From the NCBI GenBank assembly GCA_002269645.1, contig NIVC01001092.1:62001-126000 (forward strand): a stretch of DNA of 64,000 nt, read 5' to 3'. Positions 2,316 to 64,000 of this stretch are shown here, one piece after another. Numbering within the stretch: the stretch's first letter is position 1; each line of letters begins with the position of its first letter. Origin of the DNA: Macrostomum lignano. Its lineage: Eukaryota. Position numbers and translations under genes: made by a program. Under the pieces are notes generated by a model that saw nothing but the letters and a program-made list of their open reading frames with translations, was not told the DNA's origin and ran no database searches.

Positions 2316-4719
2316 TTAAGCATAATAGTTCAGGCTATTCTTCTTCTTAGCCTGAACCTCCAATATGGCGTCCATGTAGTCCTCGTGTGAGACCGTGGTA
2401 GCGCCGCGTCTCAGCGCCAGCATGCCGGCCTCAACGCAGACCGCCTTGCACTGGGCCCCGTTGAAGTCGTCTGTACACCTGGCCAGCTCGTCGAAATTCA
2501 CATCCGGCCGGACGTTCATCTTGCGCGAATGAATCTGCATAATACGGGCTCGGGCCTCCTCGTTTGGGGCGGGGAATTCGATTTTGCGATCGAGCCGACC
2601 CGAACGGAGCAGGGCGGGATCGAGGATGTCGACGCGATTAGTGGCGGCAATCACTTTGATCTCCATATTCGGCTGGAAGCCGTCCAGCTGGTTGAGCAGC
2701 TCCAGCATGGTGCGTTGAACCTCGCGATCGCCGGACTTCTCCGAGTCGAATCGTTTCGTACCGATGGCGTCCAGTTCGTCAATGAAGATGATGGCCGGCG
2801 CCTTCTCTTTGGCCAGGGAGAAGGCGTCACGGACCAGCTTGGAACCGTCACCGATGAACATCTGCACCAGCTGGGGACCGGCCAGCTTTAGAAATGTGCT
2901 TTTGGTCTGCGCTGCGCAGGCTCGGGCTAGCAGAGTCTTGCCTGGGGGTGGCGGGGTTCGAATACTGGTGATCTGGGATCTACAGATACTGATGGGTGAG
3001 CTGGGATCTACAGATACTGATGGGTGATCTGGGATCTATAGATACTGATGGGTGAGCTGGGATCTATAGATACTGATGGGTGAGCTGGGATCTACAGATA
3101 CTGATGGGTGAGCTGGGATCTATAGATACTGATGGGTGAGCTGGGATCTATAGATACTGATGGGTGAGCTGGGATCTACAGATACTGATGGGTGAGCTGG
3201 GATCTATAGATACTGATGGGTGAGCTGGGATCTGTAGATACTGATGGGTGAGCTGGGATCTACAGATACTGATGGGTGAGCTGGGATCTATAGATACTGA
3301 TGGGTGAGCTGGGATCTATAGATACTGATGGGTGAGCTGGGATCTACAGATACTGATGGGTGAGCTGGGATCTATAGATACTGATGGGTGAGCTGGGATC
3401 TGTAGATACTGATGGGTGAGCTGGGATCTACAGATACTGATGGGTGAGCTGGGATCTATAGATAATGATCGGTGAGCTGGGATCTGTAGATACTGATGGG
3501 TGAGCTGGGATCTATAGATACTGATGGGTGAGCTGGGATCTGTAGATACTGATGGGTGAGCTGGGATCTATAGATACTGATGGGTGATCTGGGATCTACA
3601 GATACTGATGGGTGATCTGGGATCTATAGATACTGATGGGTGAGCTGGGATCTATAGATACTGATGGGTGAGCTGGGATCTGTAGATACTGATGGGTGAG
3701 CTGGGATCTGTAGATACTGATGGGTGAGCTGGGATCTGTAGATACTGATGGGTGAGCTGGGATCTGTAGATACTGATGGGTGAGCTGGGATCTGTAGATA
3801 CTGATCGGTGAGCTGGGATCTGTAGATACTGATGGGTGAGCTGGGATCTGTAGATACTGATCGGTGAGCTGGGATCTGTAGATACTGATGGGTGAGCTGG
3901 GATCTACAGATACTGATGGGTGAGCTGGGATCTACAGATACTGATGGGTGAGCTGGGATCTGTAGATACTGATGGGTGATCTGGGATCTGTAGATACTGA
4001 TCGGTGAGCTGGGATCTGTAGATACTGATGGGTGAGCTGGGATCTGTAGATACTGATGGGTGAGCTGGGATCTGTAGATACTGATCGGTGAGCTGGGATC
4101 TGTAGATACTGATGGGTGAGCTGGAATCTGTAGATACTGATGGGTGAGCTGGGATCTATAGATACTGATGGGTGAGCTGGGATCTACAGATACTGATGGG
4201 TGAGCTGGTATCTGTTGAGACTAGCTGTGATGATTTGGAATCTGTAGGGATTAATGGAGATTATCGAGAATCTCATTCTAAATTAAAAAAACTATCTTAA
4301 AATGCAAAAAGCTACATTTACCAGTGCCAGGAGGTCCATAGAGCAAGACACCCTTCGGCGGCTGAATCCCAATCGACTTAAATCGCTCCTTGTGTGTCAT
4401 TGGCAACACAACAGCCTCGATTAGTTCCTAAAAAATAGTACAATTCGTATTGATGACAGCTGAAGGAACTAACAGTTGAACTGCCGTGACTTCCCGTTCA
4501 GTCTCTACAGTTCGGTGCGCGCAAGGGTTCAAGACTCAAGTCATTGTCTAGTTCTGAGCCTGGCTATCAAGCTTTGCAGCAGTTCCCATCTATAAAGCAT
4601 TAATTAGTTATGCCTACCAGTTTGCTTGCCTGTCTTAGCATTTAGTGTCTGTGTCCGTCTGCGCATCTGTCTGTGTGTCTGTGTCTGTCTGTCTGTATCT
4701 GCCTGCCTGCCTGACTGTC

Positions 4720-4767
<48 letters not shown>

Positions 4768-7700
4768 TGTGTGTCTGTCTGTATCTGCCTGCCTGTCTGC
4801 CTGCCTGTCTGTCTGTCTGTATCTGCCTGTCTGCCTGCCTGCCTGTCTGTCTGTCTGTATCTGCCTGCCTGCCTGCCTGCCTGTCTGTCTGTCTGTATCT
4901 GCCTGCCTGCCTGCCTGCCTGTCTGTCTGTCTGTATCTGCCTGCCTGCCTGCCTGCCTGTCTGTCTGTATCTGCCTGCCTGCCTGCCTGCCTGTCTGTCT
5001 GTCTGTCTGTATCTGCCTGCCTGCCTGTCTGCCTGTTGAAATATACAGCTGCTTAAACAATAAAATACCTGAATTTGCTTATCTAGACCGCCGATATCGC
5101 TGTACTGCTCAGTTGGTCTCTCGTCCACCTCCATCGCCTTGACCCTAGAGTCGTACTCAGCCGGCAGCTTCTCCAAGATAAGGAATGAATCCTTGTTAAC
5201 GCCAACCAGATCGGCTGGTTTCAGTTCCTCCGGCGGCACTAGGCCGATAACGGGCAGGAAATAAGTCTGCCTAGTGCTAGTTTTAATCACGGCCGATTTG
5301 CCCTTGCGCTGCGAGTCCAAGTCAACATTGGCGCCGTCGGCCTCTTCGGCAGCGTCAATGTCCAGCAGTTCAATTACGTTGGACACTAAATAGGGCAGCT
5401 GTTTGTTTACTTTAATTTTTTCGGCATTCTCTTTGATCTTTTCCTTCTGAGCGCTGGTCTCGTGGCTAACCCTGGTCAACTCGGAGCGCATAATTCGTAT
5501 TTCATTGTCTAGTAGCCGAGTTCGACGAACTATTTCGTCATTCGACATGCGCAGCACCTCGTCGCCAAGGTTGTCCTGTCCAGGGATTAAATATGGGCAG
5601 TCATTTTTGGTTTTATATTGTCAAAGGTTTTCAGCTGCCTTTTTTGTGTCAGAATTGCAGTGCCATTTGGCATCCCAGGTCCAAACTCAGGACGGCGAAT
5701 GGAAAACCAGAATGCCTGTTGGCATCAGTCAAAATAATCAAAATCAAATGAAATATCTAGCACCTACCCTATCATTTACACTCCTTTAGTTTGCAGACTT
5801 CTTGTTTACAGATTACTCAAATTTGATAATTGATAAAATTCTTAAAATCCTTATGATTATACAATCATTACTACATGTATTAATTCTTTGAAATTAAAAT
5901 CATAATTTTTGGCAATAGAAAACCTAGATTATAGCCCTATTGAAGTAAATTGAAAAAAGGCATAGATGCCTATTAAGTCTGCAAGTGAACAGGCAAACTT
6001 TTTGATCTAAGGTGTGCAGCTGTATAGGATCACTATCCATAAGATTACTGGTTCAATGGACAAATTACAAATAAATTTTTTATCACCAACTGCTTGTGTG
6101 TTAACCAGCCTCAGCATGGTTTACTAAATATACTAAACTAAAATACACTAAAGCATACTTTTTAAAGTAACTTTTAAACCTATTTTTTACAATATAGTAT
6201 AAGCAAGTTTTTATTAACATTTTTTGCAAAGATGTAGCAAGCCTTTAATATAGGTTGCCATTTTTTGTTTTTTTTTCATTTCTCCTCCTAATGATCAGTG
6301 ACAGTCTTCTTGGCATATTTTTATGTGAAATATGTCTATTGGCATACATTGACATATAGGACCTAGGGAAGCAAATTTCATTCTAGTGTATACTATAATA
6401 CAATCCTAACACTAGTGTGTTAAAGTTAAACATTTGCTTGCAACCATGTGTTTCCTATTCTTAAACAAATCATATAGACAGGAAAATGAAATTTTTGAAC
6501 CAATTCAAATCAATTTGTATATTTGATAAAATCTATTTGAATATTGACTAATATTGAATATGGGTATTTTAGTCAATAATATACCCACCTTACTACTTAT
6601 CAATCTGACCAATAGGCCTAAATCTTTCTTTTTATCCAATAAATGCCCCCAAGACCAAATGGCCAACCTTACTCTTCCATGTTTTGAGAATTAGTGCCCC
6701 ATATACCTATGCTCCATAAACTTGGATCTTTATGCTCCACTTTTCCTAAAGCCTTAAAGCCTCATAAAGCCTCAACCTAAGTATAATATGCTTGCAACTG
6801 CTCAAGCACCCAGCTGCTTCTCTTTAAGATATGCCACCTATTATCCCATTTTAAATTTTCTTTCTCATTTATGAACCATAATCCTTAAACTGGACTTGTC
6901 AACTCAAGAATTTTTTTTCAAATATTTCTAAATATAAATGATCATTTAAACTTTTCTTTTCTTAGAATTAGCACATTAGCACAAAGATAAAGGGTTGCAA
7001 TCAAAAATGTCATTTAGCATGCTTGGCATGCATGAAAACAGTTGACTAAAAATGTTGGCATACTTGGTATGAATTCATAGCTTAGCTCATCTTTGATTCA
7101 GATATGCCTTTGCCACTTTCCTAAGCATAGGCTATTTGCCATGCATTTAGAAGAATTTCTTTAGTGCTAGCTTCATCTTATCAATGCTTTTGGCCACATT
7201 ATACACTAGATTGCCTATTATTACATTTGCCAAGTTTTGACAGGAATAGAGATATTCCAAAATTTTGATTTCAAAAAATTTTAGAAGTCTAAATTTTGAA
7301 AGTGTCTAGTTGTGAAATTTTTTATCTAATTTTAATATTCTTAGAATTTTGTTACTGTGTTGAATCAGTGATATTTTTATGCTTTTTAAAAAGTATTTAG
7401 ATTTGTTAAAACTGTTTTATAAATATAGCATATTTGCAGAACTGTAGTAAGTTTTTGTAAATTTTGCAGAACTTAACTGTAAATGCATTTGCTATTATAT
7501 TGTGTATTTTGTGCACATTATGTCAGTACAGATACATATACAGTTTATACAATTGTGCGTTATTGCTATTCAGTAATATAATGTACATGTACATTAACCT
7601 ACTAGCTTACATTGAGTGATATTACATGTATATATAAAATATACAAGAGAGACAGGCAAAGGTACTATGCATAAAGATAAGTATATGCAATGATAGTTAC

Positions 7701-40600: not shown

Positions 40601-43600
40601 GTCACACAACCGGCGAGAGGCATTGCTGCCCATTCCGCCGACTCCCCTGAGCAGGCACACAAGCGCGCGGACACGTACGCAGTCACACGCACAGGCACAC
40701 ACTCACACTGGAGTGTACAGCGGCCCTAACTTTATTTATCGTTAGGCATGTACACTTCACTGTGTCTTGGGGTTAGCCGTCAAGGCCGTTAATTGCACGA
40801 GCAGAGCCAAGCTGAGATTCCAGTTCAGCCCCAAATTAATGCGACTGCACTTGGAATCGAGCCTGGGCCGCTGGCACATCAGAGCGCCGCACTGGACCAC
40901 TGGGCTACGGCCTCCCAAATAGACACGGTTTGTTCAGATTTCGCGGAATGGGCAGAATGGTGCCCACAGCCCCCCCCCCCCTTGAAATCCCTTGAAATTA
41001 CTAATAATATATATTATTTATTGTTATTATAGCCTGAAAACTCATTCTGATCCGACGCAGTGACTCACATTGGTAGCAATGAATTCTAGCGATTCTGTGC
41101 TCTATACAGCATCAAGTCAAGAAGGATTTGCAAATAATTCTTCTCAGAGAGAGCAGCACGGATGCAGTAGAGAATCTGGGTATGAAAAAAAAGATTGTCT
41201 CCATCTCTGAACGCTCAGGACGTGCCTCGGTCAGCGTTGGCAACGTCAAAACTTGTGCTCCGGAGAGGGGAATTGGAAAGAAAATATTAGGGCTGGGGGG
41301 GTTGGCCTGCATAGCAAAGAGTAGTCGAAGGTGAAAATGGGAAAAATGATGCGGCGTTGAGAAGGAAGAGGGGACAGTTTTTTCGGTCAGTTTTTTCATT
41401 CATTTTTCTTTTTCTGTTCGTGGCATTGTGTTGTTGCGGCCGCGACTCGTGCGATGGGAGGGGAGGAGAGGACGTGAGCGGGGAGGGGGCGGAATTCGTT
41501 GGACAAATTGGGAGCAGACGGGTCGTGGAGGGAATCCGAGCGAGCTAAGAGGGGGGGGTTTTAAGGATGAAAAAACATCAACGAGCATTTTTTATGGAGC
41601 AGCGCGAGGCCGCTCCTCCCCCATCTCCCTCTCCCTGCTCAGGGCCGAACGAGAATCCCTCTTTTACGAAAGTTTTTTTCCGCTCGATCCGCGGCGCCAT
41701 AGCGGGCAATTAGGCAACTGGGGGGGGGGGCGCACGTGATGCCAAGGCTAAATGCGAGGCGGAGGCCCCTTAATTATTAGAGCTGGCCGTGCGGGATTCG
41801 GAGGATAGAAAAAACATATTAGAGCCGATGGGTAGCTATATAATATTGCCGTTCCCACTTGCTCGTCACCCATCTCATTCATTTGCATTATAAAGTGTGG
41901 AGCTCGGTTTGGAATATTAAAAAAAGCTCAAATCCTGCTCGACTATAAGCCTGGAGTCCCCAGGTGTCTCCCCCGCCCAGGTGAGGGGACCGGGGGCGAT
42001 TGTTAACATGGCGACTGGAGCAATTCGTAGTTTATTTAGGGTTGCGATAATTATAATTTACATAATGAACTGGTGCTGCATACTACTGACTGACATTTCA
42101 CATGGTAGTATAGTGGGGACAGTTTGCGAAAATTTTGTTAAATAGTTGTTACTGATGAACAAATCCAGGGAAAATGACCTCAATGACCTCCCTAGGATGC
42201 AGCTGAAATGGCGTAGTACGCAGGAATTTATTGAAGGGGCCGCAACCCAAAGGGCACCAATATTCGGTCTCTTGGTAGGCGCTCCCGTCTCTTGGTAGGC
42301 GCTCCCGTCTCTTGGTAGGCGCTCCCGTCTCTTGGTAGGCGCTCCCGTCTCTTGGTAGGCGCCCCTGTCTTTGTTTGGCGCTCCTGTCTCTTGTTTGGCG
42401 GCGCCCCTGTCTCTTATTTAGCGCCCCTGTCTTATTTGGCGCCCCTGTCTCTTATTTGGCGCCCCTGTCTCTTGTTTGGCGCCCCTGTCTCTTGTTTGGC
42501 GCCCCTGTGTCTTGTTTGGCGCCCCTGTGTCTTATTTGGCGCCCCTGTCTCTTGTTTGGCGCCCCTGTCTCTTGTTTGGCGCCCCTGTGTCTTGTTTGGC
42601 GCCCCTGTGTCTTATTTGGCGCCCCTGTCTCTTGTTTGGCGAGCCTATCTTTTGGTAAGCGCCCCTTTCACTCGGTAGGCGCCCCTGTCTCTTGGTAGAC
42701 GCCTCAGTCACTTGGTAGACGTCCCTGTCAGCAAGGCCGGCGAATGCGACGTCCATCAGAAGCGGCAAAAGTTGAGCTCCTGTCCCCTCTTGGATCCCTC
42801 TGTCCTCTCCCGCCCTTCCCTGGTGCCAATATTTGATATAAAATCTGAGCCACTGGTTTTCACTTATTTCCTGAGTAGTCAACAACTTACACTGTCTCAA
42901 CCCCCTTTCCGCTACCAGCTCTGCTTCAACAAGCAGGACCTGCTGCTGCACAACAGCTCAGTGCACAAGGCCGACCCGAGGCCATTCCAGTGCGACACCT
43001 GCGGCAGGCAGTTCGCCACGGCCGCCTACCTGTGCCAGCACCGCCGCATTCACACCGGACAGCGGCCGTACGGCTGCAAGTACTGCGACAAGCGATTCAC
43101 CCAGCTGTCGCACGTGCAGCAGCACGAACGAATTCACACGGGCGACAAGCCCTACCGCTGCTGGCACTGCGCCAAAAGTTTCACCCAGATGAGCAACCTG
43201 CAGAGCCACCAGCGCCAGCACACCAAGGACAAGCCGCACCGCTGCGACGCCTGTCACATGTGCTTCGACTCCAGGGAGGAGCTGGACACCCACGCCGCCG
43301 CCAGGCACAGCACCAACAAGTACAGCCGGGTGCTGCTCTGCCGGGTGTGCGGCAAGGCCTACAACTCCGAGACTTACCTTAGCAAGCACCTGGCCAAGCA
43401 CCGGGACAAGGCCAGGCAGGCGGAGCATCAGCAGCTTCAGCAGCAGCAGCAGCAGCAGCAACAACAGGCTGCAGAGTTTGCCGCACATCGCTCGCCTCTG
43501 CCGCCGCCTCCGCCGCCTCCGCCACAGCTGCCGCCACCGCCTCAACAGCAGCAGCAGCAGCAGCAGCAGCTTCACCAGCACCTTCACCACCATCATCACC

Positions 43601-43812
43601 AACACCAGGCGACGTTGTCTCAGTCGACGTCGAGTTCTTCGCCTCCGACTGGACACGCGGCCGCTGCCGCCGCCGCCGCTGCCGCAGCCGCTGCCGCCGC
43701 CGGAGGCTACTCAACGGCCTTCCACGGTGGCGTCCCGTTCCATACCGCGCAGGCTGCGGCGGCTGCTGCGGCGGCGGCCGGGCCCGCTGGACCGTTCAAG
43801 TTCGCCTTCTAG
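31608..43812 (+). CDS. ZNF384-like: C2H2 zinc-finger transcription factor of the ZNF384/ZNF362/rotund/lin-29 family, 2 coding exons, about 537 aa, 6 fingers
   Basis: Exon 1 (31608-32327) ends FKCKICHQ|gtgag. Exon 2 (42919-43812) starts LCFNKQDLLLHNSSVH, completing finger 1. Family motifs are FTQLSHVQQHERIHTGDKPY, FTQMSNLQSHQRQHTKDKP and GKAYNSETYLSKH. It has polyQ/P/A/H tracts. The true N-terminus is unverified. Confidence 0.88.
32520..32930. repeat. 20-bp minisatellite GGCGCCCCTGTCTCTTGGTT (family copy 1)
   Basis: Period of 20 is directly visible. Confidence 0.95.
33885..34885. repeat. 18-bp G-rich minisatellite GGGGAAGTATTGGGGATT
   Basis: Period of 18 gives the GLGKYW repeat ORFs. Confidence 0.96.
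35390..36420. repeat. 14-bp G-rich minisatellite GGGATTTGGGACTT
   Basis: Period of 14, about 73 copies. Confidence 0.97.
37425..38328. repeat. 20-bp minisatellite GGCGCCCCTGTCTCTTGGTG (family copy 2)
   Basis: Period of 20, about 44 copies. Confidence 0.96.
42265..42725. repeat. 20-bp minisatellite GGCGCCCCTGTCTCTTGTTT (family copy 3)
   Basis: Period of 20 is directly visible. Confidence 0.94.
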
Positions 43813-45061: not shown

Positions 45062-45726
45062 ACCACTTCCCACACGGTCATCCAGTTCCCTCACGGTCAT
45101 CCAGTTCCCTCACGGTCATCCAGTTCCCACACGGCCATCCAGTTCCCACACGGTCATCCAGTTCCCACACGGCCATCCAGTTCCCACACGGTCATCCAGT
45201 TCCCACACGGTCATCCAGTTCCCACACGGTCATCCAGTTCCCACACGGCCATCCAGTTCCCACACGGTCATCCAGTTCCCACACGGTTATCCAGTTCCCA
45301 CACGGTCATCCAGTTCCCACACGGCCATCCAGTTCCCACACGGTCATCCAGTTCCCACACGGTTATCCAGTTCCCACACGGTCATCCAGTTCCCACACGG
45401 TCATCCAGTTCCCACACGGCCATCCAGTTCCCACACGGTCATCCAGTTCCCACACGGTTATCCAGTTCCCACACGGTCATCCAGTTCCCACACGGTCATC
45501 CAGTTCCCACACGGTCATCCAGTCCCAAACGGTTATCCAGTTCCCACACGGTTATCCAGTTCCCACACGGTCATCCAGTTCCCACACGGTCATCCAGTCC
45601 CAAACGGTTATCCAGTTCCCACACGGCCATCCAGTTCCCACACGGTCATCCAGTCCCAAACGGTTATCCAGTTCCCACACGGTCATCCAGTTCCCACACG
45701 GTCATCCAGTTCCCACACGGTCATCC
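45062..45726. repeat. 19-bp minisatellite CCACACGGTCATCCAGTTC
   Basis: Period of 19 is directly visible. Confidence 0.95.
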
Positions 45727-46519
45727 TGTCCGGCCGCCATCCAGGCTGGTGATCGGAGAAAACCTAGGCCTGTGAGGCAGCTGAGCAGGATGCGATTTCA
45801 CATTGAAAGATTCCGTAAACAAAAATAGCTGCTGGGCAATGCAAATTTGAAATCTTCCTTTGATGCAGACGCGCAGCTCGGGCGCAAATCATGTGGGCAA
45901 ACTGTGTGTCGGAGAGACTCCAAGGGCTGCGCTAATCAAAGAGCTGACTCTCGCCCGATGTCTCAAAATCAAAGCACCAGGCATTACTGAAACAAGAGAT
46001 CGAAATATTCGCACCTGGGTTCCGTTTCTGCTTCTCGCAGTCAAAGAGGCTTCCTCTGAGTTCTAAAAACAGTCAGGATGCCCGGGAGCGTCTTTGACAT
46101 TCCAGCGCCGGCTTCTCACCCAGATGCACTCAGGATAATGAGCGGGCGGCAAGCAGAAGCCGTGCAGGTGAGAACTGCCCGGCAACGAGGCTGTCGGTGG
46201 GGGGGGGGCGAGACGGATTAGATATCCCCACGGGGATGCGGACTCAGAGCAGTCTCCTGATGCGCAATGCAGACCCACAACGAAGTCTTGATATTTTTAG
46301 TCTGGCCAGCACTGGGCTTAATGGCTTATGAGATTAGCTGGGACATTTTTCAGCTTGGCTACCGAGTGAAACTGGGATCGATGAAGCTCAAAAATTGCCT
46401 ATTTTAGCCGGCAACTTTTTGGTGGATGAGCTGGACTTCGCACCTGTCCCGCATCGATACAGAAAACTTGCACTAGGTCTGCTCAGTCGACCATGTGGAA
46501 GTTATTTAGGACGGAATAG

Positions 46520-48137
46520 ATCTGGGATCTGGGATCTGGATCTGGGATCTGGATCTGGGATCTGGATCTGGGATCTGGATCTGGGATCTGGATCTGGGAT
46601 CTGGATCTGGGATCTGGATCTGGGATCTGGATCTGGGATCTGGATCTGGGATCTGGATCTGGGATCTGGATCTGGGATCTGGATCTGGGATCTGGATCTG
46701 GGATCTGGATCTGGGATCTGGATCTGGGATCTGGATCTGGGATCTGGATCTGGGATCTGGATCTGGGATCTGGATCTGGGATCTGGATCTGGGATCTGGA
46801 TCTGGGATCTGGATCTGGGATCTGGATCTGGGATCTGGATCTGGGATCTGGATCTGGGATCTGGATCTGGGATCTGGATCTGGGATCTGGATCTGGGATC
46901 TGGATCTGGGATCTGGATCTGGGATCTGGATCTGGGATCTGGATCTGGGATCTGGATCTGGGATCTGGATCTGGGATCTGGATCTGGGATCTGGATCTGG
47001 GATCTGGATCTGGGATCTGGATCTGGGATCTGGATCTGGGATCTGGATCTGGGATCTGGATCTGGGATCTGGATCTGGGATCTGGATCTGGGATCTGGAT
47101 CTGGGATCTGGATCTGGGATCTGGATCTGGGATCTGGATCTGGGATCTGGATCTGGGATCTGGATCTGGGATCTGGATCTGGGATCTGGATCTGGGATCT
47201 GGATCTGGGATCTGGATCTGGGATCTGGATCTGGGATCTGGATCTGGGATCTGGATCTGGGATCTGGATCTGGGATCTGGATCTGGGATCTGGATCTGGG
47301 ATCTGGATCTGGGATCTGGATCTGGGATCTGGATCTGGGATCTGGATCTGGGATCTGGATCTGGGATCTGGATCTGGGATCTGGATCTGGGATCTGGATC
47401 TGGGATCTGGATCTGGGATCTGGATCTGGGATCTGGATCTGGGATCTGGATCTGGGATCTGGATCTGGGATCTGGATCTGGGATCTGGATCTGGGATCTG
47501 GATCTGGGATCTGGATCTGGGATCTGGATCTGGGATCTGGATCTGGGATCTGGATCTGGGATCTGGATCTGGGATCTGGATCTGGGATCTGGATCTGGGA
47601 TCTGGATCTGGGATCTGGATCTGGGATCTGGATCTGGGATCTGGATCTGGGATCTGGATCTGGGATCTGGATCTGGGATCTGGATCTGGGATCTGGATCT
47701 GGGATCTGGATCTGGGATCTGGATCTGGGATCTGGATCTGGGATCTGGATCTGGGATCTGGATCTGGGATCTGGATCTGGGATCTGGATCTGGGATCTGG
47801 ATCTGGGATCTGGATCTGGGATCTGGATCTGGGATCTGGATCTGGGATCTGGATCTGGGATCTGGATCTGGGATCTGGATCTGGGATCTGGATCTGGGAT
47901 CTGGATCTGGGATCTGGATCTGGGATCTGGATCTGGGATCTGGATCTGGGATCTGGATCTGGGATCTGGATCTGGGATCTGGATCTGGGATCTGGATCTG
48001 GGATCTGGATCTGGGATCTGGATCTGGGATCTGGATCTGGGATCTGGATCTGGGATCTGGATCTGGGATCTGGATCTGGGATCTGGATCTGGGATCTGGA
48101 TCTGGGATCTGGATCTGGGATCTGGATCTGGGATCTG
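46520..48137. repeat. Near-perfect 13-bp satellite GGGATCTGGATCT, about 124 copies
   Basis: Period of 13. Three units make the 13-aa repeat of the 593-aa and 575-aa ORFs. Confidence 0.98.
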
Positions 48138-52184: not shown

Positions 52185-55100
52185 CTAGACGATGTAGCTC
52201 GCTGATGTAGTTGGACTTGTAACTGAGCCTGCAATTGCACAGATTTTGCAGTTTTGTATCCCCAGATCTGCAGTGCATGTCTAACCATCTGTCTAGCCAA
52301 GCCAGGCCCGTGCTTTTCCCTTCCATGTCTGAAGAAAATCGAAATAGAATATTGAATAGCAAGGCTAAAATTCCTGATCCCAATTTGAAATCCCACATTC
52401 CTGATCCTAATTTTAAATCCCATATTCCTGATCCCAATCTGAGATCCCAGATTCCTGATCCTAATTTTAAATCCTATATTCCTGATCCCAATCTGAGATC
52501 CCAGAGTCCCGATCCCAATCTGGGATCCCGGATTCCTGATCCCAATTTTAAATCCCAAATTCCTGATCCTAATATGAAATCCCACATTGATCCCAATCTG
52601 AGATCCCAGATTCCCGATCCCAATCTGAGATCCCACATTCCTGATCCCAATCTGAAATCCCACACTCCTGATCCCAATTTTAAATCCCATATTCCTGATC
52701 CTAATCTGAAATCCCACATTGATCCCAATCTGAGATCCCAGATTCCCGATCCCAATCTGAGATCCCACATTCCTGATCCCAATCTGAAATCCCACACTCC
52801 TGATCCCAATTTTAAATCCCATATTCCTGATCCTAATCTGAAATCCCACATTGATCCCAATCTGAGATCCCAGGTTCCCGATCCCAATTTGTGTACTCAC
52901 TCCTGCCGCCATAGCCCGAAGGCATCCGATTCCTGTTGGCCGACAGCGAAGAAGCCGAAGAAGAGACCGTCGCCATTGCCAAGTCGTCGTTTCCGCCGCC
53001 GCGACCGACGCCGCCGATGCCGTTAACTCTGCCGCCGTCGCTGCCCGAGACGAACTGCACCGGCGGCAGTCCGACTGGCGACGGATAACGCGTCTGCTGG
53101 TTGTGAAGGCTGCTGGGCTGTTGCTGCTGCTGCTGTTGTTGCTGGGAGACGGGCCGCTGCGGCTGCGACTGCCGCCGGGGATTCTCCGTCCGAAGCGGCG
53201 GCGGCGGTGGGCGCCATTCGGGCTCGAGCTCTGAGTCGAATTTTGCTAAGGACGGGGCCGTCGGTCCGAATAAAATGTAGCAGAAATTGGCGCAGCCGCC
53301 GCCGTGGTCGAACGGGTTGATCAGATCCGGGTTGCGCTTTGTGTTGTACAGGTCCTTGATCTAGAAGGTAGGGAGAGGGTTGATGAGAAGTAGCACTAGT
53401 GTTGGCCAGGGCCTTCCCGAGGGTCTGAGAGCCGTGCTACATTTCCCTGGGTGTCTAGAACCTGGCCCAGATCTCTGTAGATTGGGCTAGATCTCCCTAA
53501 GCATCTAGAGACTGTGCTACGAGCAATCACCCGTAGTATCTTCGCTCGTATAGACTGCGCACGCTAGAACACCCTGAGTATCTAGAGGATGTGCTAGATC
53601 TCTGAGGATCTGTAGACTATGCTAGACTACTCCTGGGTATCTAGAGAATGTGCTAGATCTCTGAGTATCCGGAGGCTGTGCTAGACTACCCCAGGGTATC
53701 TAGAGAATGTGCTAGATCTCTGAGCATTTGGAGGCTGTGCTAGACTACCCCTGGGTATCTAGAGGCTGTGCTGGATCTCTGAGGATCTGTAGACTGTGCT
53801 AGACTACCCCTGGGTATCTAGAGGATGTGCTAGATCTCTGAGCATTTGGAGGCTGTGCTAGACTACCCCTGGGTATCTGGAGGCTGTGCTAGATCTCTGA
53901 GTATCTGGAGGCTGTGCTAGACTACCCCAGGGTATCTAGAGGCTGTGCTAGATCTCTGAGTATCTGGAGGCTGTGTGCTAGACTACCCCTGGGTATCTGG
54001 AGGCTGTGCTAGATCTCTGAGTATCTGGAGGCTGTGTGCTAGACTACCCCTGGGTATCTAGAGGATGTGCTAGATCTCTGAGTATCTGGAGGTTGTGCTA
54101 GACTACCCCTGGGTATCTGGAGGCTGTGCTAGACTACCCCTGGGTATCTAGAGGATGTGCTAGAGATCCTCCACAATCAACAGCAGCGCTCACATCCTCA
54201 TTCGTGGAGGTCTCGCGGCAGATCAGCAGGGTGTGGAAGCCGCCAAGTCCAACCACAGAGAACAAGGAGAAAAATGCCACCAAGATGACTACCAGAGTGC
54301 AGACGGGAAGATTGAGTTGAGTTAAGGTAAACAAACACTTTAATTGCTGCTTAAAAATATCAAATATGGTAAAACTAGGTTTAAAAGTATTTTTTTGACA
54401 AAGGATATCTGGTAGGCGACTCTCTCAGCACCTGGATAAAGTCTCCATTTTTTTGCCTGCTCACTGAAATGATAGAATTGAAATGCAATAGACATGGTTA
54501 GGTAGCAGCGGTTTCATTTAGTATGGCGATAATGATCACTAGTTCAGAAAAAATATAAAATTAAGAAATGGCATCTCGTAAAAAAACTAATACTCAAACA
54601 AAACAAAACTCGAGGAAGAAAATTCAAGTAGAAATTCCATTCTTTCTAAGATCGTTGATTTCCGTGACACCCCAACTCCCAAAGATCCCAATCTCCATCA
54701 CACCCCAGCACACCAAAGATCCCAATCCCCGTGACAACCCATGACACAGACCCCAATTCAATTGGGAGACTTCTCAAGAGATCTCATTCTAGTAAATATC
54801 AAATTTTCAAAGAAATCACCCATTCTCCAGAGATCTGGATCCAAATCAGTATTGGTGTCTTTTCAAAGGCAAAAATTCCAAAGTCCAGCTTCCAAATAAG
54901 GATCCTTTAATCTGGAAAGTATCCCACTCTGACAAAGGAAATCCGTCCCAACTCAAAGCACTCACGAATAACCAAATTGATGCAGCCGAACACCATAATG
55001 TAGACGCAATAGACGGTCACGCTGGCCAAGAACAAATAAAAATATCGATAATTCCGCCTGCCAACGCAGTTGCCAACCCACGGGCAGTGGTGATCGAATC

Positions 55101-56490
55101 TGTCAACGCAATTGTCGCATGTAGAACAGTGGCTGGCCCTTGGCGGCCGCCACAGCTTGCAGGTCTGGCAGAATTTCAGCTTGAATAATCGGCCATTGAT
55201 TCGAATGTCGCGCAATGTCTCGTATTGCGGAACCGTGCTGTGCGAGGCTTGACGTGGTTTTTTTTATCGATTTATAGATTTTGTCAGATTGTGGCTGATT
55301 TTGAGCCCGATTAGCCAACCAATATTGGCAGTTTTTGAGCCTAATTAGCTAACCAATATTGCAGTTTTTGAGCCCGATTAGCCAACCAATATTGGCAGTT
55401 TTTGAGCCTAATTAGCTAACCAATATTGGCAGTTTTTGAGCCTGATTAGCTAACCAATATTGGCAGTTTTTGAGCCCGATTAGCCAACCAATATTGGCAG
55501 TTTTTGAGCCTAATTAGCTAACCAATATTGGCAGTTTTTGAGCCTAATTAGCTAACCAATATTGGCAGTTTTTGAGCCTAATTAGCCAACCAATATTGGC
55601 AGTTTTTGAGCCTAATTAGCTAACCAATATTGGCAGTTTTTGAGCCCGATTAGCCAACCAATATTGGCAGTTTTTGAGCCTAATTAGCTAACCAATATTG
55701 ACAGTTTTTGAGCCCGATTAGCCAACCAATATTGGCAGTTTTTGGGCCCGATTAGCCAACCAATATTGGCAGTTTTTGAGCCCGATTAGCCAACCAATAT
55801 TGGCAGTTTTTGAGCCCGATTAGCCAACCAATATTGGCAGTTTTTGAGCCCGATTAGCCAACCAATATTGGCAGTTTTTGGGCCCGATTAGCCAACCAAT
55901 ATTGGCAGTTTTTGAGCCCGATTAGCCAACCAATATTGCAGTTTTTGAGCCCGATTAGCCAACCAATATTGGCAGTTTTTGAGCCCGATTAGCTAACCAA
56001 TTTTTGGCGAATTTCAAAACCTCGACGACCACCTGAAGTCCCTACAAGTCTATTACATTAGTTGGGTTCTGAGACAAATTAAATTTATTTTACAGTGTAG
56101 CTCGTACTTTTCCATGGAAATCAATAAAGTGCACCCGAATCCAGATTCTCCCTATCTAAAAAGTCAAACTCTAAAAGATGCAAACTCACCCATCTCAGCC
56201 TCCATCCAGGCAGCCTCGTCGGGCCCAGCCCTGGGAATGATGCCCGGATCGCTCAGGGTGGTGCGCAGCAGGCAGGCCAGCACAAAGCCGCACTGCAGCA
56301 CGGCGAAAACTGGCACAGCTGGCGACAGATTCACTGCCAAAAAACGACAATCGAACGCGAAGAATAGTCCCGAAAACACCACCACCAGAAGCAGGGTTAG
56401 GTAGAACACTGACAGGTTCCTAGCGCACACGCAGCGACCATTGCAGGTGATCCAGCTCTTACCCTTGTACTGCTCCCAGCGCTTTGGCAT
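52185..56490 (-). CDS. ZDHHC14-like: DHHC palmitoyltransferase of the ZDHHC9/14/18 (Erf2/approximated) subfamily
   Basis: Exons: 56490-56190; possible microexon 56041-56021; about 55248-54966 (DHHC-CRD: [35 protein letters not shown], acceptor uncertain); 54463-54409; an AT-AC intron; 54296-54194 (TNED motif); 53360-52901; and a last exon either 52228-52185 (ends SYIV*) or 52329-52108. Confidence 0.9.
52365..52890. repeat. 26-27-bp minisatellite (ATTCCTGATCCCAATCTGAGATCCCAG-like) in the last ZDHHC intron
   Basis: Directly visible. It starts about 10 nt from the donor site. Confidence 0.93.
53440..54165. repeat. About 50-bp composite minisatellite in a ZDHHC intron
   Basis: Alternating CTAGACTACCCCTGGGTATCTRGAGG and CTAGATCTCTGAG subunits. 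Confidence 0.9.
54297..54408 (-). other. U12-type (minor spliceosome) AT-AC intron, 112 nt
   Basis: Donor ATATCCTTT at 54408-54400, branch point TACCTTAAC at 54329-54321, and acceptor ..TGCAC| at 54297. Splicing restores the frame [16 protein letters not shown]. Confidence 0.85.
55302..56000. repeat. 34-bp minisatellite GATTAGCCAACCAATATTGGCAGTTTTTGAGCCC in a ZDHHC intron
   Basis: Period of 34 (TGGCAG at 55801 and 55835). Confidence 0.95.
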
Positions 56491-58893: not shown

Positions 58894-61800
58894 TGTAACA
58901 AGTTGTCGTTTCCCTGTACCGTATGCACTGTGCACCCTGCTGACTTAATTTGTTGCGCAGTCGCATTCTTTTCTCCGACTCGCTTAGTTTCCATATATTT
59001 GAATGTATTCTGGAATTGATTTTATTCCCGCACGTGAATTACGCTTTTAAGCCTCGCACGCTGTCTGCAAAACATCGCCAATGGTTATAAATACAGTAAT
59101 GGTTTGAGCAGGAATCTTTAAGACTTTCTCCCCTCGGCTAAGTGAGCACAGCCGACAAGAATTGCCTGCACGACTTCGTCACTCGTATTTCAAATGGCGA
59201 CTTGGGTATTTACATTTGGCGACCACGCTAGTGTTTCATCATGTGGAACGACAACGACTTCCTGGAGCTTCGAGGACGGCTGGTCAGACAGTACAGCTAC
59301 AGCAGCTACAGCAGCCGAGTCAAGCATTGTGTCCAGTTTGAGTTCATACAACCTGTTTGTGTCTGCAGCAGCCAACAGATTGACCAACCCATTCATCGCA
59401 GACAAAGATCCACGGACGACGCGGCCAGAGTCGTATTCAACAAACCCGTTCCATGAGCATGTTCAACGTCAAGCTCGACATGTCCTGGAGCTGGAATACG
59501 CCCCACCTAACAACCTGGCTTATGCAGCGCTGCCAATGGCAAATCACCGGCTTGCTCTGCCTTCGGTGCCCAATCCTCCGCCATACAATGGTCGGGAAGA
59601 CTTCGACAACTTCCTCGTCAGGATTGGCGCTCACATTGGTCGATTCCCCGGCCTCCTGGACATCGAGAAGGTCAATACCCTGACGGCTTATCTCGGACCA
59701 GCATTCGCAACGTACACTGCCTGGCTGGCAAATGGCAATGCAGTGCGCGTACGTAGGTCTTCCGCCCGGGTCAACATTGGATCAGCTACCTGGGGTGTAC
59801 TACGAAGACCTGGTAGAACACCTCCGCTCACGTCACGGTGGTGCCAAGAGTGCAGCCCTTCTTCGACGCGAGTTCCGTGCTCGACATCGGAAACCTGACG
59901 AGAGCTTTGAGAAGTACCTGACGGAGCTCCAACGGTTGGCTGTTTGGGCCCATCCGGACCCGGGAGCCCAGGTCTTTGTGCAGCAGATAGTTCTCGAGCA
60001 GTTCATGCAAGGCCTAAACGACAGCTACGTCACTGAGCGACTGCTCAACCATCCAACTCCGCCACACACTGTGGAGCAGGCACTACGCTTCGCCCAGCAG
60101 CTTCGGGAAACGCGGGCGTACATGAGTACCAGTCTAGTGCAGCCGCAGATGTCGCCTACGCCGCCAACACCACCGAGGCCTCCAAGATCGACTGAGCTAC
60201 CAAGACCGCTGATGCCGCAGCAGTCGAGCACCGTAGGACAGCAACGACTGGAGAAAACAGTCTGTTACAGCTGCGGTCAGCTCGGCCATATTCGACGCAA
60301 CTGCCCAAACGCCGAGGGGGCTGGTCCGCGAGGCCAGCACCGGCCCTCTCAGCACTAAGACACTCGGCCTCCACTCCACGCCTCAGCAGCTGTCAGCCTG
60401 GTCAGGCGCGTTTCGTCACCGCGCGCATTCTCAGACGACGGCGCCACTGCTTGATCGACACCGGAGCAGAGGTGTCATGCATCGGCGCCGAGATCTACCG
60501 GAAGGCCAGGCGGCAGCTGCAGCCCAGCAGCATCACCATTAGAGGCGTGGACGGCAACTTGCAACGAGTGCTGGGCGAGACAACATTGACAGTGACACTT
60601 GGAATCGTTCGTGTACAACATCGATTCGTCGTACTGGAGAAGCTGCATCCGGCATCCGTCATCCTGGGCTGTGACTTCCTCAGCACCCACGACGTCTCTG
60701 TTCATCTGCAGGCCGGTTGCATCACCTTCAACAGCATAGGCGCATCAATCCCGACTCGGCAAAGCAAAGAAGCAGCGCAGACCTGCAGGCTAGTGTCGGC
60801 GGCCTCAGTTCAGCTGCAGCCAGGCGATCGGTGGATCATCCCAATCAAGCCAGCCCAGCAAGCCTCGTGGACGAAATCAGGCGCTCCTGGGATAGTCACC
60901 GGGACAAAACTACAAGGGCTGCTCATCGGTCGCTGCGTCTCAAAGCTATCCGACAGCGGAATGGGACTGGCTGTCATCAACGTCGGCGATCAGATCATCA
61001 GCATTAGCGACGGCGACATCATCGGCAGTTTCTCACCGCTCAGTAGCCACGCACGAATCCAGACGGCCGCTGGCAGCTTGGCGGTGACGACGGCGGTAGT
61101 CTCGGTTTCGGCGACATTGCAACACACGACAGACTGGTTAAACAGCATAAAAATCGAAAGTGATATTTCGGTCGACGAACAGCAGTCTGTCAAAGATCTT
61201 CTGCTGGAATTCTGCGACGTCTTCGCATCACCAGGCAACGCTGGCCGCACAGCAGTTTTACGACACCACATCGACACCGGTGGAGCGCGACCGATTCGAC
61301 AGGGCCTTCGACGTGCAGCGCGCCCGGTCATCGAAAAACAGGCCGAACTAGTCGACGACATGCTGCAAAAAGGCGTCATCCGGCCGTCATCTTCGCCGTG
61401 GGCATCGCCGATCGTGCTCGTCAGGAAGAAGGATGGGACGGCACGCTTCTGCCTTGACTATCGGCTGCTCAACCAGGTCACCAAGCCGGATGTCTTCCCG
61501 ATCCCTCGCATCGACGACACCTTGGACGCTCTGGAGGGCAACGCTTACTTTTCGGCACTCGATCTGGAGAGTGGCTACTGGCAGGTCGAAGTCGAAGAGC
61601 GCGACAAGGAAAAGACTGCTTTTATCTGTCACTAAGGCCTTTTCGAGTTCAACGTCATGCCCTTCGGCCTGCGCAACGCCCCGGCGACGTTTCAACGACT
61701 TATTCAGCTGGTGCTCCAAGGGCTGACCTGGCAAGCGTGCCTCGTTTTCATCGACGATGTCATCGTTATGGGCCGGACGATCGCTGAGCACAATTCTCGA

Positions 61801-64000
61801 CTGCGAGCAGTGCTTGAGCGGCTGAGGGAGGCAAACCTGCGGCTGAAACCGTCAAAGTGCCGTCTCGCCAACTCGACGATGATTGTGCTCGGTCATCGAG
61901 TCTCCAAGTCCGGCATCACCGTCGACGAGACCAAGACTGCCGTCATCCGCGCATGGCCAACACCAGGAAACCCTAAGGAGGTGAAGAGCTTCCTAGGCCT
62001 CACGGCGTACTATCGGCGATTCGTTCAGGACTATTCGAAGATTGCCGAACCGCTACGACGCCTGACTCTTCCGGCGGAGAAATTCCAGTGGACACCAGCG
62101 GCTGAGGCAGCATTTGTCCAACTGAAGGCGGCGCTAGCGTCAGCACCAGTCCTTGCCTTCCCGGACACCAGCCCAGACAGCTCGGAGTTCGTTTTGGATA
62201 CTGACGCCAGCGACTGTGCCATTGGCGCGGTGCTCTCTCAAGTCCAGGCCGGCGAGGAACGGGTCATCGCGTACTCCAGTCGGGCGCTGTCAAGGGCTGA
62301 ACGCAACTATTGCGTGACGAGGCGAGAACTGCTGTCGGTCGTCGACCATGTCAGAAAGTTTCGAACGTACCTGCTGCCTCGGACATTCACCGTCCGCGTC
62401 GATCATCAGTCTCTGACACATCTGCTGACGTTCAATGAGCCCGAGGGTCAACTGGCACGGTGGCTGCAGACTCTAGACGAGTACGCCCAGGCCGTCAGCA
62501 CAACAACGCCGACGCTCTATCACGGGTCCAGCAACGATGTACCAACCAATGTCGAATCTGTCGGCCGGAGCCAGTAAACATCAGAAAGACAACTTCCTCG
62601 GTGGCTTGCCAAACGGACACCGAGGCGCCAGCAGCGCCTGCTAACGACATCGTCCAGGTCAGCACCATGCAGGCGAGGCGCAAGCAAATTCTACAGCCGC
62701 TTACCAGTGAGAGTGAAGACAGCAGCGATGACGACGCGACTGAGGCACCAGCAGCAGAAAGCGGACCACCGTCTCTACGCAGAATACAGCTTCAGGATCC
62801 AGTCATCAGCCCAGTGTTCCGGCTGCTCGCCGACGGCAAGACCATATTCACCGATCGGCAGCGCGACAAAGTGCCGTCGGAGACCCTGGTGCTGGCACAA
62901 AAGGTACACGATCTGTGCTTCGTCAACGGCGCCATGCACCGCCTGGTCAACGCGAAGCCGGTGCCGGTCATCCCTCTCTGTCAACAGCGCGACGTCATCT
63001 ACGAGGTCCACAACATCGGCCACCTGGGCGAGGACAAGACGCTGGCCAGCCTCAAGGCGCGGTTCTACTGGCCGAAGATGGCCGAAAGCGTCCGGCTGGC
63101 TGTTCGTTCATGTGGAGTCTGCCAGCGAGCCAAGACGCCGCTCATCAAACGTGCGCCGTTACAAAGTATCACAGCGGGTTTCCCCATGCAGCGCGTCGGG
63201 TTCGACGTCGTCAAGGTCGGCGTCTCCAAGAATGGCAACGATCGTCTACTAACGATCATCGACTACTTCAGCAAATGGGTGGAGCTGGTGCCAATGCCGG
63301 ACGAGAAGGCAGCAACTATTGCCAAGGCGTTGTTCAGCCACTGGATCGCGCGCTGGAGAGCTCCACATGTCTTCCATTCGGACCGAGGCAGAAGCGTCGA
63401 CGGCCGCATTGTCCGAGGTCTCTGCAGCCTGCTGGAGATCGACAAGACCCGAACATCAGGCTACCATCCGCAGTGCGACGGCCTGGTGGAACAATTTTAT
63501 CGGACGCTTCATCAAATGCTGCGCTGTCACCTCCAGACCGTCAATCCGCCGGACTGGGAGGACGCCCTGCCGCACTGTCTCCTGGCCTACAGAAGCAGCA
63601 TCAGCGCGACAACAGGGTTCTCCCCGCACTTCCTGTTGACTGGCCGAGAGGTGGTGCTGCCGTTGGACGTCGTCTACCGGCCGCCAGAGCCCCCAGCGAT
63701 CGTCGGCCAGTACGCGGTGGAGACCGTCCAGCGGCTGCAGGACGCCTTCGAAACAGTGCGGAGGACAACTGGTGCAGCTCAGAGGCGTCAGCGGCGGTAC
63801 TACGACCGGAAGGCAAGGAAGCGGAAGTTTCGTGCTGGCGACCTCGTTTGGCTGTTCGTGCCTCCCGCTGTGCTCTCCAGAACCAACGGTCTGCCGGTGA
63901 AACATCAGTCGCCGTGGACTGGCCCATTCAACGTCCTTCGCAGAACGTCGCCGGTCAACTACCTGATTCGGCCCGTCGATTACCGAGACGGCGAGATCAA
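58894..64000 (+). mobile_element. Ty3/Gypsy LTR retrotransposon, defective and cut by window end, in RAB6 intron 1
   Basis: Putative 5' LTR 58894-59192 (TGT...CA) followed by a TGG PBS-like site. Gag 59194-60358 has a CCHC knuckle (CYSCGQLGHIRRNC). Protease LIDTGA, RT (FIDD), RNase H and integrase (HHCC, then D..D..E, open to 64000) follow in PR-RT-RH-IN order. The LTR is unconfirmed because the 3' LTR is absent from the window. Confidence 0.93.

Follow-up and report, generated by a model that had tools for sequence, protein, structure and literature searches.

The ZDHHC gene and its third intron

We analysed a 64,000-nt stretch of the Macrostomum lignano genome (contig NIVC01001092.1, positions 62,001 to 126,000 of the forward strand; hereafter the window, with positions counted from its first letter), which carries on its minus strand a six-exon ZDHHC gene whose third intron begins with AT and ends with AC. 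The coding part of exon 1 runs from the ATG at 56490 to 56190 and is followed by exon 2 (55247-54966), which holds the DHHC cysteine-rich domain; by exon 3 (54463-54409), whose 55 nt encode part of a leucine, 17 further residues and part of a serine; by exon 4 (54296-54194), whose 103 nt complete that serine and add 34 residues covering the fourth transmembrane helix and the region of the TTxE-like motif; and by exon 5 (53360-52901) and the coding part of exon 6 with the stop codon (52228-52185), all on the minus strand. The DHHC motif is intact (Pfam PF01529, E = 3.3e-41, 140.9 bits against a cutoff of 28.7), and a 12-residue segment of the domain is invariant in our protein alignment (A1). 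The best matches listed from outside Macrostomum are all ZDHHC9, ZDHHC14, ZDHHC18 or app proteins, with 43-55% identity and E values down to 1e-105, and they cover at least 95% of the query, save for one partial bird sequence at 84%. By homology, then, this is a predicted ZDHHC9/14/18-type protein S-acyltransferase (palmitoyltransferase) gene of M. lignano.

Four of the five introns have standard GTGAG...AG ends. Intron 3 (54408-54297, minus strand, 112 nt, phase 2), as read directly from the letters and recomputed, has a different set of signals: firstly, its 5' splice site is ATATCCTTT (54408-54400, minus), preceded by an exon ending in ...CAG (AG|ATATCCTTT) and beginning with the /ATATCCTT by which AT-AC introns of the U12 type are recognised; secondly, it contains the branch-point sequence TACCTTAAC (54329-54321, minus; consensus TTCCTTAAC), an 8/9 match to TTCCTTRAY, with the branch adenosine at 54322 and 25 nt from there to the last base of the intron; thirdly, it ends in GCAC|T, the AC lying at 54298-54297 on the minus strand and the exon resuming at 54296. 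The branch spacing is longer than the 11-13 nt quoted in the literature as the optimum for minor introns, yet falls within the 40-nt zone that classifiers search. No second branch-site-like motif was found closer to the 3' end of the intron.

The acceptor of exon 3 is normal (tcatttcag|TG), and the exon closes with ...CCT ACC AG, while exon 4 opens with T CTG GTA GTC. Spliced together in frame, the two yield a 30-residue stretch that aligns without gaps to real ZDHHC14 sequences, for example that of Latimeria, and the product is identical to the public protein P0121. A gapless protein alignment through ESPTSLVV was obtained from the AT-AC junction only. An earlier note on this DNA, written from its letters, had proposed the 55-nt exon, the U12 donor, a branch point about 25 nt from the end and the AC acceptor; all of these are confirmed on the minus strand, as are the spliced protein that it gave and the gapless alignment to a ZDHHC14-type segment, here checked against the actual Latimeria protein.

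Taken alone, each motif occurs in the 64-kb window at chance frequency (RTATCCTT, 2 observed against 4.9 expected; CCTTAAC, 7 against 7.4). The donor followed by CCTTRAC 50-80 nt downstream occurs once against 0.04 expected (both strands, 128 kb), and this sole pair coincides exactly with the point at which the protein homology breaks off and has the phase needed to resume it. The only other ATATCCTT/RTATCCTT match in the window (33774-33767, minus) lies in AT-rich surroundings without coding context; a pattern scan found no CCTTRAC 50-80 nt downstream of it, and it is probably a chance match. Nearer in-frame 3' sites exist within the intron, namely an AA at +10 from the branch in the window copy (54311-54312, minus), which would add LPVCT, and, in one of the paralogues described below (L002), an AC at +16 (about 4531-4536). 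These could be minor alternative 3' splice sites; they are unused in the RNA-derived annotated proteins.

The six-exon model is residue for residue P0121, that is, the 414-residue GenBank protein PAA52035.1/PAA72439.1 (BOX15_Mlig025734g1 / Mlig029817g1), and the GenBank proteins of NIVC01001092.1 and of four other copies use the AT-AC junction 54409/54296. The Mlig_3_7 annotation was built from RNA only, combining STAR and StringTie assemblies, BLAT-mapped de novo transcripts, TACO merging and TransDecoder open reading frames (PMC5730564). Because the GenBank protein uses this junction and the annotation derives from RNA sequencing (RNA-seq), the AT-AC junction is indirectly supported by transcripts. 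Among Logan and other complementary DNA contigs, we found none encoding the ZDHHC proteins of these copies.

Two older public models treat the region differently. In UniProt A0A1I8IHP8 (P0002) the 55-nt exon is left out and exon 4 begins after the AG that ends at 54289, so that the protein reads ...CINLVIL-ILVAFF.... The second model, a fusion of 1427 residues (P0122), departs from exon 2 before its end, resumes after the CAG whose last base is 54347 and also translates the antisense strand of a retrotransposon. The conserved ESPTS segment is missing from both. The earlier note's warning that standard gene finders would misannotate this gene thus holds for these two models and fails for GenBank, where the AT-AC junction was already in place. 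A0A1I8IHP8 and the 1427-residue model are best regarded as wrong products of prediction restricted to GT-AG introns, and the GenBank BOX15 model is preferable.

Conservation within Macrostomum lignano and across animals

The assembly (GCA_002269645.1, Mlig_3_7) holds five copies of this family. Three are near-identical, namely the window copy (L008, 100% identical to NIVC01001092.1 over 5,991 nt), L007 and L001; they lie on separate contigs and are about 96-100% identical (L001 at about 96.5% nucleotide identity), a pattern that fits the redundancy and the recent duplication of the genome described in the DV1 line. The remaining two, L002 and L003, are old paralogues with 68% and 65% protein identity, respectively. 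At the same codon position, all five copies have AG|ATATCCTTT, a (T/A)TCCTTAAC branch site and AC|T. The donor ATATCCTTT is identical at 9/9 bases across them; the branch site reads TTCCTTAAC in L001, L002 and L003 and TACCTTAAC in the window copy and L007. The near-identical copies also differ by a 1-nt change in an A-run of the intron. Branch-site motifs were located by pattern; a MAFFT alignment of four introns misaligned those of the old paralogues.

The old paralogues share the donor 12-mer AAGATATCCTTT; the interiors of their introns have an identity of 0.53-0.59, compared with a mean of 0.54-0.59 after shuffling; third positions match in just 40-54% of the codons that specify the same amino acid. 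The survival of twenty signal bases in otherwise saturated sequence speaks for purifying selection on U12-type recognition in the M. lignano lineage. The conserved signals of the paralogues are the best available evidence here for what would be a working minor spliceosome.

To compare the intron across animals, we fetched the genomic loci of three orthologues (Hydractinia, Branchiostoma and ZDHHC9 of the tilapia Oreochromis) and mapped their exons. Each has an AT-AC intron with U12 motifs at the same codon position and in the same phase; a comparison of position and phase with ZDHHC9/14/18 orthologues had been proposed as a check in the earlier note. The intron of the cnidarian Hydractinia reads ...ETPT AG|ATATCTTTT...TTCCTTGAC...TAC|T, with 12 nt from the branch A to the 3' end; that of Branchiostoma reads ...QSPA AG|ATATCCTTT...TTCCTTGAC...CAC|T (10 nt); and that of Oreochromis ZDHHC9 reads ...TPG AC|ATATCCTTT...TTTCTTAAC...CAC|T (11 nt). 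The terminal AC|T is therefore kept in these three genes as in all the M. lignano paralogues. Their introns are much longer, at 355-1023 nt against 105-136 nt in M. lignano.

In human and mouse, ZDHHC9, ZDHHC14 and ZDHHC18 are already catalogued as minor-intron genes (Minor Intron Database, supplement of Olthof et al. 2019, PMC6717393), with the donors AAG|ATATCCTTT (ZDHHC14, ZDHHC18) and AAC|ATATCCTCC (ZDHHC9) and the branch sites TCCTTAAC/TCCTTGAC (PMC6717393). These introns belong to the same gene family and the same AT-AC subtype as the M. lignano intron, and the donor 12-mer of human ZDHHC14 and ZDHHC18, which scores 99.2 on the matrix of PMC6717393, is the 12-mer of the M. lignano paralogues. 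The donor flank and the orthologue in tilapia suggest that the human introns lie at the same position. Length again differs, the listed human genes having introns of 522 nt to 12.9 kb as compared to the 105-136 nt of M. lignano. A minor intron shared from flies to humans is also known in another DHHC gene, ZDHHC8 / Drosophila CG34449 (Lin et al. 2010, PMC2831892; Pessa et al. 2010, PMC2952598), but that intron is of the GT-AG subtype and lies in a different DHHC subfamily (ZDHHC5/8), unlike the AT-AC intron described here. As AT-AC ends, position and phase are common to a cnidarian, a cephalochordate and a teleost, and as the intron corresponds to those catalogued in human and mouse, the sequences indicate that the ZDHHC9/14/18 AT-AC intron is ancestral and dates at least to the cnidarian-bilaterian ancestor.

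Alternative readings and minor splicing in flatworms

Together, these findings give us high confidence that 54408-54297 is a U12-dependent AT-AC intron, the third of a M. lignano ZDHHC9/14/18-type gene, and an ancestral one; this reading follows from the consensus motifs, the RNA-seq-derived protein that contains the junction, the retention of the motifs in diverged paralogues and the orthology with the human and mouse introns. According to the accepted scheme of minor splicing, the donor ATATCCTTT would pair with U11 and afterwards with U6atac, U12 would pair with TACCTTAAC so that the branch adenosine is bulged, and the AC 25 nt downstream would be the 3' splice site at which ...CCT ACC AG is joined to T CTG GTA... 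(ESPT-S-LVV). Removal of the intron in M. lignano would, by inference, depend on U11/U12/U4atac/U6atac.

Several observations weigh against this interpretation: stop-free, in-frame GT-AG pairs exist at the locus; the branch spacing is about twice the quoted optimum; the branch site of the window copy deviates from the consensus at one base; the transcript support is indirect, coming through the published annotation pipeline; and no small nuclear RNA (snRNA) or other Rfam family was matched when the entire window was scanned at gathering thresholds. The GT-AG pairs raise the question of whether the mature mRNA arises by ordinary splicing, through skipping of the 55-nt exon or use of a cryptic donor and acceptor, with the U12-like motifs incidental. 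The earlier note stated that the exon lacks a usable GT donor and that an AG acceptor in the right phase is missing, a claim that enumeration refutes, for the donor 54432|54431 is stop-free and in frame with acceptors ending at 54350, 54347 or 54338, and so is the donor 54421|54420 when paired with the acceptor whose last base is 54375. Public models have been built in just this way, P0002 (A0A1I8IHP8) splicing from 54966|54965 to the AG that ends at 54289 and P0122 entering at the CAG that ends at 54347. However, such models lose the conserved (V)LRESPTS or insert 17 residues absent from every orthologue, P0122 is a fusion that includes retrotransposon antisense, the RNA-seq-derived GenBank proteins of 5/5 copies use the AT-AC junction, and the U12 motifs are kept both in paralogues with randomised introns and in the three animals of other phyla. 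We consider ordinary GT-AG splicing extremely unlikely; the in-frame alternatives were rejected on homology and on transcript-based annotation, not on phase.

Even if the AT-AC boundaries are correct, the intron might be removed by the major (U2-type) spliceosome, in which case it would say nothing of the minor one. Some AT-AC introns are documented substrates of the major spliceosome (PMC6717393), and a branch spacing of 25 nt is closer to the U2 than to the U12 pattern. We nevertheless give this idea next to no credence, given that the donor ATATCCTTT is a full U12 consensus and not compatible with U1/U6, that a TTCCTTAAC-type branch site is kept in every copy and in the orthologues, and that the orthologous human and mouse introns are classed as minor by position-weight matrices (PMC6717393). 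A further concern is that the intron type is right while the window copy itself is an inefficiently spliced or decaying duplicate, functional transcripts coming from L001. The window branch site has a T-to-A change (TACCTTAAC), only L001 among the three copies that are about 96-100% identical has a perfect TTCCTTAAC, and reads mapping to multiple places could have spread the annotation to all copies. The reading frame of the window copy, on the other hand, is intact over 6/6 exons; the T-to-A change leaves the CCTTAAC core untouched and is shared by L007; and the near-identical 12-mer TTTACCTTAACC receives a score of 89 with the matrix for human minor branch sites (PMC6717393). A decaying window copy is therefore very improbable.

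The natural inference from a U12-dependent AT-AC intron is that M. lignano has a working minor spliceosome. The earlier note considered that such retention would be notable in a flatworm. The organism is indeed a flatworm, but minor-spliceosome snRNAs have already been published for this phylum: the complete U11, U12, U4atac and U6atac set was described in Schistosoma mansoni and S. japonicum (Copeland et al. 2009, PMC2770079), U4atac and U6atac were reported in Schmidtea mediterranea, with the U4atac candidate validated by reverse-transcription PCR (Schmidt et al. 2018, PMC6312358), and Schistosoma is stated to have minor introns and snRNAs (Larue and Roy 2023, PMC10639083). Schistosoma and Schmidtea are Platyhelminthes like M. 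lignano, but belong to Neodermata and Tricladida rather than Macrostomorpha. With snRNAs documented in both, retention of minor splicing in a flatworm is expected and not notable. The main text of the 'Taxonomy of introns' paper mentions neither flatworms nor ZDHHC. We found no literature linking Macrostomum with U12 or the minor spliceosome; minor splicing in M. lignano is thus new for the species only in a trivial sense.

The intron is accordingly real but ordinary, the flatworm orthologue of a catalogued minor intron that is already correct in GenBank. It provides sequence-level evidence that minor splicing persists in the macrostomorph M. lignano, as it does in Schistosoma and Schmidtea, and beyond such bookkeeping its importance is small.

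One feature sets the M. lignano introns apart. In the five M. lignano copies, among them the paralogues whose introns are otherwise randomised, 22-31 nt separate the branch A from the 3' splice site, compared with 10-12 nt in Hydractinia, Branchiostoma and Oreochromis. It is conceivable, though we think it unlikely, that the minor spliceosome of M. lignano selects 3' splice sites much farther from the branch site than that of other animals; were the species' U12 introns all of this kind, that would point to an altered rule of 3'-splice-site selection in this lineage of flatworms. The long spacing offers a small lead for surveys of minor introns in flatworms.

Surroundings of the gene

Three of the five introns of the ZDHHC gene (1, 4 and 5) consist largely of minisatellite arrays (55292-56001, 53572-54164 and 52370-52888) with units of 34, 59 and 27/132 nt in 10-21 copies (about 4 for the 132-nt period). 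Array length varies among the near-identical copies, intron 1 measuring 942 nt in the window and about 3.4 kb in L001. Just upstream of the gene lies a Ty3/gypsy-like long terminal repeat retrotransposon (59194-62577, plus), which probably reaches the end of the window. The coding sequence of this element is interrupted, leaving at least four open reading frame pieces, which comprise gag (including a zinc knuckle of the CCHC type), an aspartyl protease, a reverse transcriptase divided between two open reading frames, and RNase H. It is the antisense strand of this element that the fused model P0122 translates.

Downstream of the gene, tandem repeats occupy 46519-48137 and 45063-45726. A very regular 13-nt tandem repeat, GATCTGGATCTGG, is present in about 125 copies with 99% matches and is open in all three minus-strand frames and at least one plus-strand frame; near it is a 19-nt array of 35 copies. 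Two long open reading frames elsewhere in the window probably belong to neighbouring genes: that at 42712-43812 (plus) has Pfam C2H2 zinc fingers, and that at 4604-5557 (minus) has a Pfam proteasomal ATPase OB domain.

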